This document shows positions 53,591 to 61,419 of a stretch of DNA of 64,000 nt, in pieces (within the stretch, counting starts at the first letter, position 1; each line of letters opens with the position of its first letter). The stretch is from Raja brachyura (lineage: Eukaryota). Both the position numbers and the translations under genes were made by a program. The notes under the pieces are model-generated. The model ran no database searches. It saw only the letters and a list, made by a program, of their open reading frames with translations, and was not told the DNA's origin. The DNA is taken from positions 63,054,001 through 63,118,000 of the forward strand of contig OY740792.1 of NCBI GenBank assembly GCA_963514005.1, given 5' to 3'.

Positions 53591-53692
53591 CAAAGATTAT
53601 AGAGTGGAGCAAGATGTGCCACTTAGAGAAATAAGGGTAGTATGACACGTGTGATTGTCGACGCCATTTTACCGGGCTTCCCCCACACTGTC

Positions 53693-53786
53693 ATGGCGTC
53701 CACATCTACAGCTCACTGTTCGGTAAAAATTGCTCTAATCGCCGATGTGGACGACTCAACTTCAGCTTCCCCAACAACAAAGAAAG
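53693..53786 (+). pseudogene. THAP domain exon 1 of the transposase (frameshifted)
   Basis: MASTSTAHCSVK(N)CSNRRCGRLNFSFPNNKE(R) after restoring one A in the run at 53725-53729; C-x4-C and FP motif; followed by AG|ATGAGG, apparently a GTGAG donor mutated to ATGAG. Confidence 0.75.
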
Positions 53787-54397
53787 ATGAGGAAATATTA
53801 CTGTTTTCTGTCGATATTATCTGTCCTGAAAATGTATTTTCTGTTCCCCTAGCAACGCTCATTGGGAAACTAGGTTTGTCGGTACATTAGAAAGATACTA
53901 GATTTTTTTTTAATAGACTTGCCACAATAATAAAGTCATCAATTTTTGTTCTTCTGTACATTTTTGGTTTTGTTTCTGTTTCTGTACGGCAGGAGTCTCC
54001 AAAATATGGTCCGTAGGGAGAGAGAGGGAGAGCGAGAGAGAGAGAATGGGCAGAGGGAGTTGGGGAGAGAGACACACCAGGCCCATCATGAGATTTTAAG
54101 CTCAGATTCGAGTTGGGGAGCGCGGCGGTCCGGGGCTGCTCTCAGTGTTGTTACCAGTTAGATCCCTGGAATTGTCAGAGCCGAGACATCACTGGGCCGC
54201 CGTGAAGAAGGGTGCAATGGTGGGGTGCGGGGTTCGGCAACGGTCAGAATGGAACGGCTGTGCGTTATAACGTGCCATCATTTTTTTGCGGCTTTGCGGC
54301 AACAGACGGGATTCCAGGTCTGCCTTCCTGGTGCCAGGATCCAGGATGTTACGGACAGAGTGCAGACAATCCTCAAGGGCGAAGGTGACCAGCCGAA

Positions 54398-54745
54398 GTG
54401 GTCGTGCATGTTGGCACAAATGATGTTGGAAAGAAGGAGATGAATTTTTTGCAGCGGGACTTCAGAGAGCTCGGAAAAATGCTGAAAAGCAGGACTTCCA
54501 GGGTTGTTATCTCCGGTTTGCTTCCAGTTCCTCGTGCTGGCGAGAGCAGGAACAGGGAGATATGGGATCTGAATGTGTGGCTGAGGAACTGGTGCAGGGG
54601 GCAGGGATTTAGATTCTTAGATCACTGGGATTTTTTTTATAGTAAGGGGGAACTGTACAAAAGGGACGGATTGCATCTTAACAGGTGGGGGACCAGCATT
54701 CTGGCCGGCAGGTTTGCCACTGCTACACGGATGGTTTTAAACTGA
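54398..54745 (+). pseudogene. CR1 ORF1 C-terminal SGNH/GDSL esterase-like domain
   Basis: VHVGTNDVG...VVISGLLPVPR...DGLHLN motifs; upstream CLPGARIQDV is in another frame. Confidence 0.88.
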
Positions 54746-54949
54746 ATAAGGGGGGTGGGGTATCAAATGGGATAGTCGAGGACGGAGTTAGAGGGAAAGA
54801 GAGTAAAGCGATGGTTAATGACCCCAGAATTAACGGGAAAGAAAGCTCACAAAGGGTTAGGAGAGTATGGCCAAGTGTAATAGGGATTGATGTGAAAGGG
54901 GCCACTTGTCAACATAATTGTATAAGGAGTAAGAGTGTTGTAAAAACAA

Positions 54950-58075: not shown

Positions 58076-58162
58076 ATTATATATCATCCATTCTGCAGAT
58101 ACGTAGTTATAATCTTTTTTTTCTTCTCAGTTAATCCTATATGAGATTTTCTGTAATTTCAG

Positions 58163-58400
58163 ATGTGGACAGCGGGTCCAGAATACTCGTCGACAAGATC
58201 TCCTCCACCAAACTCCGGTGTACGTGTCAACCACCCGTCGTCTTTGTTCTGAACACTGAACGTGACCAGTTTTCCAACAGGCAGACCAATAACAGGCTCA
58301 ATTGCAATGTAGTTCCAACACCATTTGACATCCCGAACCCGCCGAAAGGTCAGTTTTCCCAACGCAGGTTACTCAAGAGGAAGAATGAGAACCTCCCGTC
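58163..58400 (+). pseudogene. THAP domain exon 2 of the transposase (frameshifted)
   Basis: tttcag| then (R)CGQRVQNTRRQDLLHQTPVYVSTTRRLCSEH(F)ERDQFSNRQTNNRLNCNVVPTPFDIPNPPKGQFSQRRLLKRK after restoring 2 nt at 58257; CxxH, AVPTIF-like box and basic tail; conserved W codon reads CGG. Confidence 0.85.
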
Positions 58401-58879
58401 ACCCACACAAAATTGTGCAAATTACAATTTATTTATTATTGTATAAGTTGGAAATGTTGCCCTTTGGGGTAAGCAAGGGGTGGGGCTATCATTGTCTGAA
58501 ATATGTCTCATTTTACATCACTTTCAAAACACTGCAACCCCCTGTATATGTCGCGCATAAAATTATGTAAATTATGTAAATATTACCATAAATGACGGAA
58601 ATAAAAAGTGTTTTCTTTGTTTATGAAGTTCAACGTAGAGTTATTTGAAATTGTGGGGGTTGGTGCAATATACGGCTGACCCACAAATGTGTCGTTATGA
58701 GACATCCACATTTAAAACATCCATGGCTCAAAAAAGCAAGAAGGTCCCCATGTTATTTGACCAGCTTATCGACTGAATTTAAATATGTAGGTATGTATGC
58801 ATTACATTGTGTTACGCTAATATAGAGTGAAAGAATGGAAAAATATTTCAACATTGTGTTCATGGATATTTTATTCACA

Positions 58880-59655
58880 NNNNNNNNNNNNNNNNNNNNN
58901 NNNNNNNNNNNNNNNNNNNNNNNNNNNNNNNNNNNNNNNNNNNNNNNNNNNNNNNNNNNNNNNNNNNNNNNNNNNNNNNNNNNNNNNNNNNNNNNNNNNN
59001 NNNNNNNNNNNNNNNNNNNNNNNNNNNNNNNNNNNNNNNNNNNNNNNNNNNNNNNNNNNNNNNNNNNNNNNNNNNNNNNNNNNNNNNNNNNNNNNNNNNN
59101 NNNNNNNNNNNNNNNNNNNNNNNNNNNNNNNNNNNNNNNNNNNNNNNNNNNNNNNNNNNNNNNNNNNNNNNNNNNNNNNNNNNNNNNNNNNNNNNNNNNN
59201 NNNNNNNNNNNNNNNNNNNNNNNNNNNNNNNNNNNNNNNNNNNNNNNNNNNNNNNNNNNNNNNNNNNNNNNNNNNNNNNNNNNNNNNNNNNNNNNNNNNN
59301 NNNNNNNNNNNNNNNNNNNNNNNNNNNNNNNNNNNNNNNNNNNNNNNNNNNNNNNNNNNNNNNNNNNNNNNNNNNNNNNNNNNNNNNNNNNNNNNNNNNN
59401 NNNNNNNNNNNNNNNNNNNNNNNNNNNNNNNNNNNNNNNNNNNNNNNNNNNNNNNNNNNNNNNNNNNNNNNNNNNNNNNNNNNNNNNNNNNNNNNNNNNN
59501 NNNNNNNNNNNNNNNNNNNNNNNNNNNNNNNNNNNNNNNNNNNNNNNNNNNNNNNNNNNNNNNNNNNNNNNNNNNNNNNNNNNNNNNNNNNNNNNNNNNN
59601 NNNNNNNNNNNNNNNNNNNNNNNNNNNNNNNNNNNNNNNNNNNNNNNNNNNNNNN
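58880..59655. other. Assembly gap
   Basis: Run of N. Confidence 1.
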
Positions 59656-61419
59656 AACAAATTACAGGAAATCATAAGAAAGACACTAGAGAAATATATA
59701 TGTGATTTTGTGTGTGTATATACAACTATATCACATTTTTAACATGAATTGGTCCTTAAAACTGAGCCAATCTTCAATTTGGCAACACACTGTCTCATCA
59801 CCCATCTATGTCACTGAGATCCACGAGGTGATGTACCGTTTAGATCACATGCGGTGTCCATTCAGATGGATGCAGTATTCTACTACATGATCAGGTGAAC
59901 GAAGTGGAAAGGGTGTTCGCAATGTTATCGTTCCATGTGGTATTCATCAACATGGAAAGGATTAAGAAATACGTGCACTCACTGTGCCAACCAGCTCACT
60001 GGTGGTCACCTCGCGACAACCGTTACACAAAATGTATTTGTGTATTCTGATGCCATTTGCGGAGACTTGCCATCAATATGCTATCTTTTATTATATTTGT
60101 TGTTGATACTATGTTAGTCATGAACCCAATAAAGTGCTTGTCAAGGAATTTGAAATTTGACCCCATAAGTCATATTTTTGTGTGCAGCTTTGTAAATATA
60201 TTTATATATATGCATATATTTATATGTGCATAATTAGATATATAATGGCCTTTATGGTTTATGTACATCATCTGAATGAATGAGAGAGTAATAGTGATGC
60301 TTTAAATTAAAGTTGATTCCGCTCCATGAGAAGGAAATGTATTTATCTCTAACTAGCCTCTCACACACAAACACACAAACACACATTCATATAAATATAT
60401 ATATGTATGTTAAATTTAATTTTGTGCAGAGCGAGTGTTAAAGCAACACAAGGGAAGCTGCACAATACAATGCAAGGGGAACTACGCAAAGGTGGGGGCT
60501 GGGGAGGAAAGATGGGAGGGAAATGGGGGAACAGGGGGGAAACATTTACAATAAAATGAACTAAAATATGTGAGGTGATAGATGCGCTGTATCAAGCACT
60601 GTTCCCTACACTCTTCCCGGTCTGAAGAAGGGTTTCGGCCTATTTCCTTCGCTCCATAGATGCTGCTGCACCCGCTGAATTTCTCCAGCATTTTTCACTG
60701 CCTACTGTTCCCTACAACACTGATTACACCAAAGATGGTGGAGCGGACTACACACGGGAAGCGTAATGGAAGTCGCGTTTTGCATTGCAAAATGGCAGCC
60801 GCGACGTTCCGTTACGTACTATACCTCAGTGCATTGGTTTACGTTGGAGTGGAGTATCCTGCTCCGCTCTATGATCTTTGATGCCCACTAGTGTCGGACA
60901 TTTCCACCCTGGAAAACGGTTCTGACTGTCCCCCGCCTTTGATTTGAATATCGGCCCATCGCGGAAGCGTCCATGTCGCAGGGCTGGAAACTGTAAGTAT
61001 CCCGAGCTAATTCTGCTACCACCGTCATCTGTTGCAACAAGCGACGGCTCCCACTGATTGTCGCCGGAAGCTTGCGTCCGTTTCAGGATGGACGATGACC
61101 GCAAGGTCAACATTTGAAACATGGAAGATGGACACGGAAGAAGAATTTCAATCTCTTCATCAGCAAGCTTGATCTTGCACCACAGACTTTAATTTTGCAC
61201 TATTGTGGTTACTGCGTATTACTGTTACTATATTATCGATTATTATATACCGGTATGCATCTATGATATATTGCATTAACAGGCTTGGAAAGCTGCAGCA
61301 TGTATCAGTTTAATTGCCTGCTGCCGGTACATATGACAATTGACCCTCTCTGAGCTGGATTACTAGATAACGCACCACTAGCAACAGCCTTATGGTTCCA
61401 TCAACTATTATCCTTTGCT

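Follow-up and report, generated by a model that had tools for sequence, protein, structure and literature searches.

A probable P-element-type transposon fossil with an intron-split THAP remnant in the genome of Raja brachyura

Which kind of cut-and-paste DNA transposon left the paired inverted ends and the broken THAP coding sequence that lie between positions 53591 and 60880 of a 64,000-nt stretch of the Raja brachyura genome? This stretch (assembly GCA_963514005.1, contig OY740792.1, forward-strand positions 63,054,001 to 63,118,000) is here called the window, coordinates refer to it unless a contig is named, and the element is called element A. A sequence-only reading of the window had placed element A in a P-like THAP family as a non-autonomous member, with a hAT affiliation as the alternative. 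We conclude, with a probability of roughly 85%, that element A is one old, broken, non-autonomous copy of a P-element-type cut-and-paste DNA transposon. It is assigned to the P superfamily because its terminal inverted repeats (TIRs), which start CAAAGAT, are homologous to those of elements encoding P-type transposases, and because it shares with such elements the position and phase of an intron that splits the THAP domain.

Element A has exact ends and lies in an old CR1 copy

The limits of element A are given by a TIR pair inside a target-site duplication (TSD), and the left TIR aligns with the ends of two elements on metagenome contigs, L001 and L002, and of a second element in the window, element B, all three described below.

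53583..53590, no strand: left TSD copy, ATGCCCAC, identical at 8/8 positions with 60881-60888
53591..53623, plus strand: left TIR, 33 nt, starting CAAAGAT, one of a repeat pair and alignable to the termini of L001, L002 and element B
60848..60880, minus strand: right TIR, inverted partner of 53591-53623
60881..60888, no strand: right TSD copy, ATGCCCAC

The TIRs, earlier described as matching, do form a pair, and their match is imperfect: counted by hand inside the duplication, 27/33 positions agree between 53591-53623 and 60848-60880, and a repeat search of the window returned the same pair as 36 nt at 81%. For a 21-nt degenerate TIR pattern, shuffles of the window gave 0.00 expected chance matches. 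The TSD is as perfect as had been proposed, with ATGCCCAC present on both sides of the element.

The sequence around element A exists a second time in the window, which allowed the insertion site to be compared with a paralogue. The left flank (53332-53588) aligns, reversed, to 14431-14176 (69% over 268 nt, E 3.5e-21) and the right flank (60900-60930) aligns to 13431-13400, which are the segments that flank element B on either side in its host CR1 copy. With B and one TSD copy removed, 60881-60899 and 14163-14181 match at 12/19 positions without an indel (by hand), and both TSD copies of A map onto a single 8-mer, 14174-14181, in the paralogous CR1 copy. Because the flanks of A are contiguous in this paralogue, which holds the 8-mer once, the exact ends of the element are confirmed, and A is inserted into the 3' part of an old CR1 copy.

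13432..14154, plus strand: element B, a 723-bp relative of the kind of a miniature inverted-repeat transposable element (MITE), with 33-nt TIRs matching at 31/33 positions and a TSD of ATGGAAAT / GTGGAAAT (7/8)

The ends of B align with those of A, and B sits in another, oppositely oriented CR1 copy, where 19 nt separate it from the counterpart of A's insertion site. Inside B, the segment 13519-13597 is palindromic and carries the TIR-like core CAAAGAT at 13548 and 13567; the arms of the palindrome are inverted stretches of ~28 nt (13519-13547 and 13578-13606), and a further inverted CAAAGAT stands at 13632. These internal motifs, together with a motif of A at 60730-60748, may be subterminal transposase-binding repeats.

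A decayed THAP domain lies inside the element

Within element A, the remains of a transposase gene can be laid out as two exons around a long intron.

53693..53786, plus strand: putative exon 1, with a start codon and the first third of the THAP domain, in the layout seen in L001 and L002
53787..58162, plus strand: transposase-gene intron, 4,376 nt, enlarged by a nested long interspersed nuclear element (LINE), with its acceptor in the place and phase seen in L001 and L002
58163..58256, plus strand: exon 2 piece a, the middle of the THAP domain (C..[W>R]VQNTRR.DL...LCSEH), identified by phmmer, tblastn and a THAP profile
58258..58443, plus strand: exon 2 piece b, the end of the THAP domain (VPTPF) and a DIPNPPK linker, in another frame, with the stop of the open reading frame (ORF) at 58444-58446

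A phmmer search with 58161-58256 against 1.84 billion representatives returned six proteins, three of which contain a THAP domain by Pfam (P0002 at 123 bits, P0004 at 44.9 and P0005 at 45.6, against a cut-off of 23.9); the remaining matches, P0001, P0003 and P0006, were rejected as low-complexity or repeat artefacts. By tblastn, piece a (58161-58256, frame +3) is 66-69% identical to P0004 and P0005, and piece b (58258-58347, frame +1) is 63% identical to the same two proteins, on which the two pieces lie adjacent with one residue missing (summed E 1e-15 to 1e-17). Because piece b was absent from the phmmer query, it constitutes independent support. A THAP profile built from other proteins ranked pieces a and b first and second among 4,007 six-frame fragments of the window, with E-values of 2.4e-7 and 0.04, respectively. 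A search of the PDB with the THAP pieces gave nothing relevant and a search of the ESM Atlas with the 31-aa piece gave no usable match; the THAP part of P0005 found only generic THAP fragment clusters in the ESM Atlas. We interpret exon 2 (58163-58347) as a real THAP remnant, and so the decayed domain that had been proposed for 58163-~58400 is borne out.

Decay has left three marks on this coding sequence. The conserved Trp codon reads CGG (Arg) at 58173-58175, a 2-nt deletion relative to L001 and L002 falls in the Phe codon after CSEH, between pieces a and b, and exon 1 carries one 1-nt frame change in the A-run at 53725-53729; the last two are the frameshifts that the sequence-only reading had counted.

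P-type relatives carry the same ends and the same THAP intron

The P-type relatives of the element come from metagenome contigs. A first metagenome scan with the P0004/P0005 alignment as query found no relative. With residues 1-100 of P0002 as query, we recovered long proteins with a similar THAP domain that included P-type proteins and no hAT architectures, and a follow-up search with one such long protein returned more than 500 P-type proteins. A PNPP(K) tail after the THAP domain is common to dozens of P-type transposases.

Three of the relatives share ends with element A, namely those on L001 and L002, which carry transposase P0057, and the one on L004, the locus of P0035 (40% identical to P0057). 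On L002, the element at 71-4924 has perfect 36-nt CAAAGAT TIRs around a P-type gene; the left end on L001 (3246-3260) equals the left end of A over its first 15 nt (15/15); and L004 starts CAAAGAT and has an inner CAAGATG..CAC block in common with A. By Pfam, the genes of these relatives hold THAP, Tnp_P_element helix-turn-helix, TNP-like RNaseH_N, GBD and RNaseH_C domains, and P0057 matches the structure of the Drosophila P transposase (6p5a) at E 8e-33.

The genes on L001 and L002 also share a split THAP domain. Their exon 1 encodes the first third of the domain and ends AG^GT (the caret marking the splice point) inside an Arg codon, followed by an intron of 3,452 nt in L001 and 997 nt in L002 and then by exon 2. 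In L002, exon 1 alone matches Pfam THAP positions 1-29 at 21.1 bits, and exon 2 extends into the catalytic domains through two long ORFs that overlap (1361-3016 and 2977-3948). The L004 gene has no intron at the THAP-splitting place.

The region of exon 1 in element A resembles this arrangement. Its ATG stands 102 nt from the end of the element, versus 157 nt in L001 and 128 nt in L002, with a ATGGCGTC start in all three; it then runs through Cys-x4-Cys and F.FP and ends on the AG of the split Arg codon, which is the splice point of the relatives. At 58163, the acceptor tttcag^A TGT has the place and phase of cag^(A/G) TGT in L001 and L002. By tblastn, the left arm matches best to the N-terminal THAP regions of P-type transposases (for P0117, E 0.018 with a 2-kb target), and the exon 1 region matches the THAP N-termini of P0117 and P0023 weakly. 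If only exon 2 were a THAP remnant, exon 1 would be chance sequence and the original first exon would be lost or elsewhere; consistent with this, exon 1 scores 3.0 and 1.7 bits against two THAP profiles (E 25 and 55, not significant), ranks 108 of the 4,007 fragments in the profile scan, has no Pfam match, and has AT in place of GT at its donor site. Set against the position and layout common to A, L001 and L002, and against the P0117 N-terminus among the best left-arm matches, this explanation seems unlikely to us, and we infer that exon 1 is a true exon. Of the two pieces that had been proposed to join at an Arg codon, exon 2 is upheld, and for exon 1 the sequence is present and its layout agrees, with no significance when taken alone; the proposed ~4.4-kb intron holding a CR1 is recovered as 53787-58162 with a CR1-group LINE.

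Other features of the relatives were noted in passing. A distant P-type element, with 27% identity to P0057, occupies 2954-7669 of contig L010; its 31-nt TIRs begin CACAAAG and its 8-bp TSD, GTCCTTTG, is perfect. The intron of the P-type element on L001 contains a ~385-bp MITE (3798-4184) with 58-nt TIRs, which is absent from the 99.8%-identical L009, and a tandem array of ~110-120-bp units (by eye) lies at ~9600-11400 of L001, between the gene and the missing right end. The protein calls P0025, P0033, P0077, P0057, P0004 and P0005 start with a peptide that resembles a translated pyrimidine tract and ends on Arg before the C..W, and P0035, P0078 and P0053 are without such a leader. These Arg-ended leader peptides seem to be unspliced calls across the THAP intron, and the intron seems to be common in the clade.

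P superfamily or hAT superfamily

Several observations weigh against placing element A among P-type transposons. Its CAAAG ends fit the hAT motif YARNG, and the TSDs of A and B fit nTnnnnAn (PMC3014272, PMC10368747). The P-type relatives lie on metagenome contigs and their THAP identity to A is only ~40-50%, and no autonomous copy from the host genome was seen. The flanks of the L002 element are without a duplication (2/8 match), which may reflect a collapsed assembly of several copies. Taken separately, the THAP pieces have no Pfam match, as is expected because they amount to 19-31 residues of an 87-position profile, and the profile scores of exon 1 are not significant. A tblastn search with 140 THAP/P-type proteins found no P-type catalytic core in A, so it is by its ends, its THAP part and its gene layout that it is counted as a member, and the assembly gap inside the element could hide more sequence than the 776 nt estimated for it.

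On the other side, the features expected of a P-type element were found in the ends, the duplications and the coding remnant. The TIRs are homologous to those of autonomous P-type elements (15/15 with L001, and homologous with L002 and L004), the duplications fall in the range of 7-8 bp (8/8 in A, 7/8 in B, perfect in L010), and a THAP domain in the family's transposase gene is represented by the exon 2 pieces.

A hAT-superfamily element of the THAP-bearing kind behind THAP12/PRKRIR would likewise show 8-bp duplications and YARNG termini, and element A has both. Its ATGCCCAC duplication and the GTGGAAAT copy at B fit the Hermes-type target nTnnnnAn (PMC10368747), and PRKRIR (THAP0) is listed as hAT-derived, so architectures that combine THAP with a hAT transposase exist (PMC3257199). 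The P-type relatives are alike in ends and duplications, however, and because YARNG-like ends and 8-bp TSDs also occur in the P-type lineage they do not discriminate, and the hAT reading falls. The three elements whose CAAAGAT TIRs are homologous to those of A code for P-type transposases, and no hAT transposase was found in A or in its same-ended relatives; no ORF gives a signal for the hAT dimerisation domain or DUF4371; the intron position and gene layout match those of P-type L001 and L002; the long proteins recovered with the P0002 query include P-type proteins and no hAT architectures; and a 33-nt TIR exceeds the 10-25 bp usual for hAT elements (PMC3942097). Largely on the strength of the TIR homology, we rejected hAT membership, which we hold to be improbable, and the hAT alternative of the sequence-only reading goes with it. 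Its proposal of a non-autonomous member of a P-like THAP family agrees with the ends of L001, L002 and L004, with their P-type domains and with the intron position in L001 and L002, and A is very probably a non-autonomous member of the P superfamily.

Among three TSDs of the lineage (53583-53590, 13424-13431, and 2946-2953 of L010), T occupies position 2 in 3/3 and A occupies position 7 in 2/3, a pattern that could be a target preference like that of Ac-type hAT elements (n=3).

The assembly gap and the missing transposase core

The interior of element A is interrupted by an assembly gap, to the right of which lies a non-coding arm.

58880..59655, no strand: assembly gap (N), estimated at 776 nt
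59656..60847, no strand: right arm, non-coding, with a match to B at 59709-59737, a repeat at 60602-60703 and a TIR-like motif at 60730-60748

The length of element A depends on the length of this gap, for which 776 nt is only an estimate. Neither gap edge is reached by any ORF or protein match in the ORF, Pfam and tblastn scans, so nothing hangs on a reading frame across it. A gap of estimated size inside the element raises the possibility of a mis-scaffolded join, or of two halves that belong to different insertions. Such a chimeric scaffold is very improbable and was rejected, given that the TSDs are identical, that the flanks are contiguous on the paralogous CR1 copy with its 8-mer present once, and that a segment just beyond the gap on its right side (59709-59737) is 90% identical, in the correct orientation, to an internal part of B (13815-13844). 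The paired ends, the single-site flanks and this family-internal match argue that both halves joined in the scaffold come from one insertion. The remaining alternative, a host THAP gene fragment between chance inverted repeats, takes its cue from the THAP domains of many host genes and from THAP1 and THAP2 as the closest solved relatives of P0005, and was rejected as scarcely credible in view of the TIRs and TSD, the second copy (B) in the window, the single-site flanks on the paralogous CR1 copy and the TIR homology with autonomous transposons.

Returning to the P-type element, its catalytic part was looked for on both sides of the gap. The segments 58400-58879 and 59656-60847 gave no coherent match to the 140 THAP/P-type proteins and none to Pfam, and the ORF of A stops at 58444, where exon 2 of L002 runs on into the catalytic domains. 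Neither an RNase H core nor a GTP-binding insertion of its own was found in A, part of whose interior lies behind the gap. Since no core was found, A is filed as non-autonomous; an internal deletion is the probable cause, provided that the gap does not greatly exceed its estimate. Of the internal deletion claimed earlier, the absence of the core outside the gap stands, and the deletion itself is conditional on a gap of about the estimated length. A tentative C-terminal CxxC remnant at ~59960-60000 had also been suggested, and it gained no backing from Pfam or from coherent tblastn matches to the 140 proteins.

Two further observations concern the sequence on either side of the gap. In the right arm, 60602-60703 holds a ~90-nt piece of an abundant interspersed repeat that occurs in at least 15 other places in the window (e.g., 12388-12471, 41818-41883, 46702-46791, 39442-39539 and 21485-21572); several of these copies adjoin CR1 3' fragments, which suggests a short interspersed nuclear element or a LINE-associated module. 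To the left, at 58100-58879, 12-23% of the sampled 31-mers recur in the sequencing runs of each of nine organisms.

A younger CR1-group LINE enlarges the intron

Most of the intron of element A is taken up by a retrotransposon and the low-complexity sequence that follows it.

54080..57826, plus strand: nested CR1-group LINE, with an approximate 5' limit and an exact 3' end
57827..58075, no strand: CT-rich low-complexity stretch from the LINE tail towards exon 2

By Pfam, this LINE encodes Lipase_GDSL_2 in its ORF1 and Exo_endo_phos and RVT_1 in its ORF2, and its 3' end consists of three TTTCTATG-type octamers (57803-57826). A tail of octamer repeats is a CR1 trait, and an ORF1 esterase is known from CR1-like elements. 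The apurinic-type endonuclease with reverse transcriptase and the octamer 3' end without poly(A) place it in the CR1 group, a designation set by domains and tail that does not tell CR1 from a neighbouring clade. Eleven 5'-truncated copies of the LINE lie in the window, with ends at ~57805-57831, one of them 98% identical. The LINE family was recently active; because that copy is 98% identical and the TIRs of A are 18% diverged, the LINE is younger than A.

The LINE is near intact at 54685-57727, with ORFs of 721 and 290 aa and one frame break between them, and it is the 3' part that is 98% identical to 38989-39355. A GA-rich stretch upstream of the LINE (54013-54072) is 84% complementary to the CT-rich sequence after its tail (57846-57900), a likeness that may be due to chance between low-complexity sequences or may belong to the structure of the insertion.

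Likeness to known systems

The closest likeness to element A is found in the relatives on L001, L002 and L004, which have the CAAAGAT start, the inner (A/G)CAAGAT..CAC block and TIRs of ~33-36 nt. L001 and L002 further resemble A in the distance of the ATG from the end (100-160 nt), in the codon and phase at which an intron interrupts THAP, and in a VPT.F-D[IV]PN.P linker. Unlike A, all three have a complete P-type transposase.

The Drosophila P element differs from A in its termini, CATGATG versus CAAAGAT, and in a THAP domain that is not split by an intron; its catalytic part is present, and none is found in A. It is like A in its 8-bp TSD and its TIRs of ~31 bp, its transposase has an N-terminal THAP domain as in A's family, and it forms internally deleted non-autonomous copies and has internal repeats near its ends (PMC7776569). 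More generally, P elements are described with 31-bp TIRs, 8-bp TSDs, THAP binding beside the TIRs and internally deleted non-autonomous copies (PMC7776569).

Among vertebrate P-type elements, those of the Pdre2/THAP9 type resemble A in their 8-bp TSDs, as reported for zebrafish Pdre2 (PMC10983969), and in their many internally deleted copies (PMC10983969, PMC7776569). By its description, Pdre2 is set apart from A by 13-bp TIRs starting CATACC and by 12-bp subterminal repeats. Our literature searches turned up no report of P-type elements from cartilaginous fish.

Elements of the hAT group share with A an 8-bp duplication, YARNG-type termini and nTnnnnAn-type targets (PMC3014272, PMC10368747), and in the hAT group, as in A's family, a combination of THAP and transposase exists (THAP12/PRKRIR; PMC3257199). 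They are unlike A in that neither A nor its same-ended relatives have a hAT domain.

Proposed history of the element and what it means

The following history would account for the locus. Autonomous members of the family would encode a transposase whose N-terminal THAP zinc finger is interrupted by an intron and followed by a helix-turn-helix domain. By analogy with P elements, this enzyme would bind sites beside the ~33-nt CAAAGAT TIRs, excise the element and insert it where the target strands are cut 8 bp apart, and repair of the staggered ends would give the ATGCCCAC duplication; the transposition chemistry is taken over from those elements. Element A inserted into the 3' portion of an old CR1 copy. 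It retains both ends, its 5' region, the putative first THAP exon and the beginning of exon 2 (THAP and the PNPPK linker), and the whole catalytic part is missing, so that it either relied on a transposase made elsewhere and acting in trans or was deprived of its interior once inserted, the missing part being presumably deleted rather than lost in the gap. Decay would then have altered 6/33 TIR positions and the donor site, introduced the 1-nt and 2-nt frame breaks and turned Trp into Arg, and the younger CR1-group LINE would later have inserted into the first intron of A.

On its own, element A is an ordinary transposon fossil. A broader proposal, which we put forward tentatively and think somewhat less probable than its negation, is that A and B belong to an old and widespread P-type "CAAAGAT clade", in which the terminal 15 nt and the THAP intron would have been kept between a vertebrate and unrelated, probably invertebrate-associated metagenome hosts, and whose ends also show the hallmarks of hAT elements (8-bp TSD, YARNG, T at target position 2). 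If such a clade exists, vertebrate repeat libraries would regularly list its coding-free MITEs, B among them, under hAT by mistake. Independently of its extent, P-type elements with CAAAGAT ends have the structural features by which hAT elements are usually recognised, and libraries that sort coding-free elements by TSD length and terminal motif may mislabel them.

Vertebrate P-type transposons have been described in the form of the zebrafish Pdre elements (PMC10983969, PMC7776569). Elements A and B together document a P-type family in a vertebrate genome, by a non-autonomous copy that bears a THAP remnant and by a MITE-like relative, and the THAP-splitting intron, common to distant P-type elements, offers a marker for tracing the lineage and the origin of THAP host genes.

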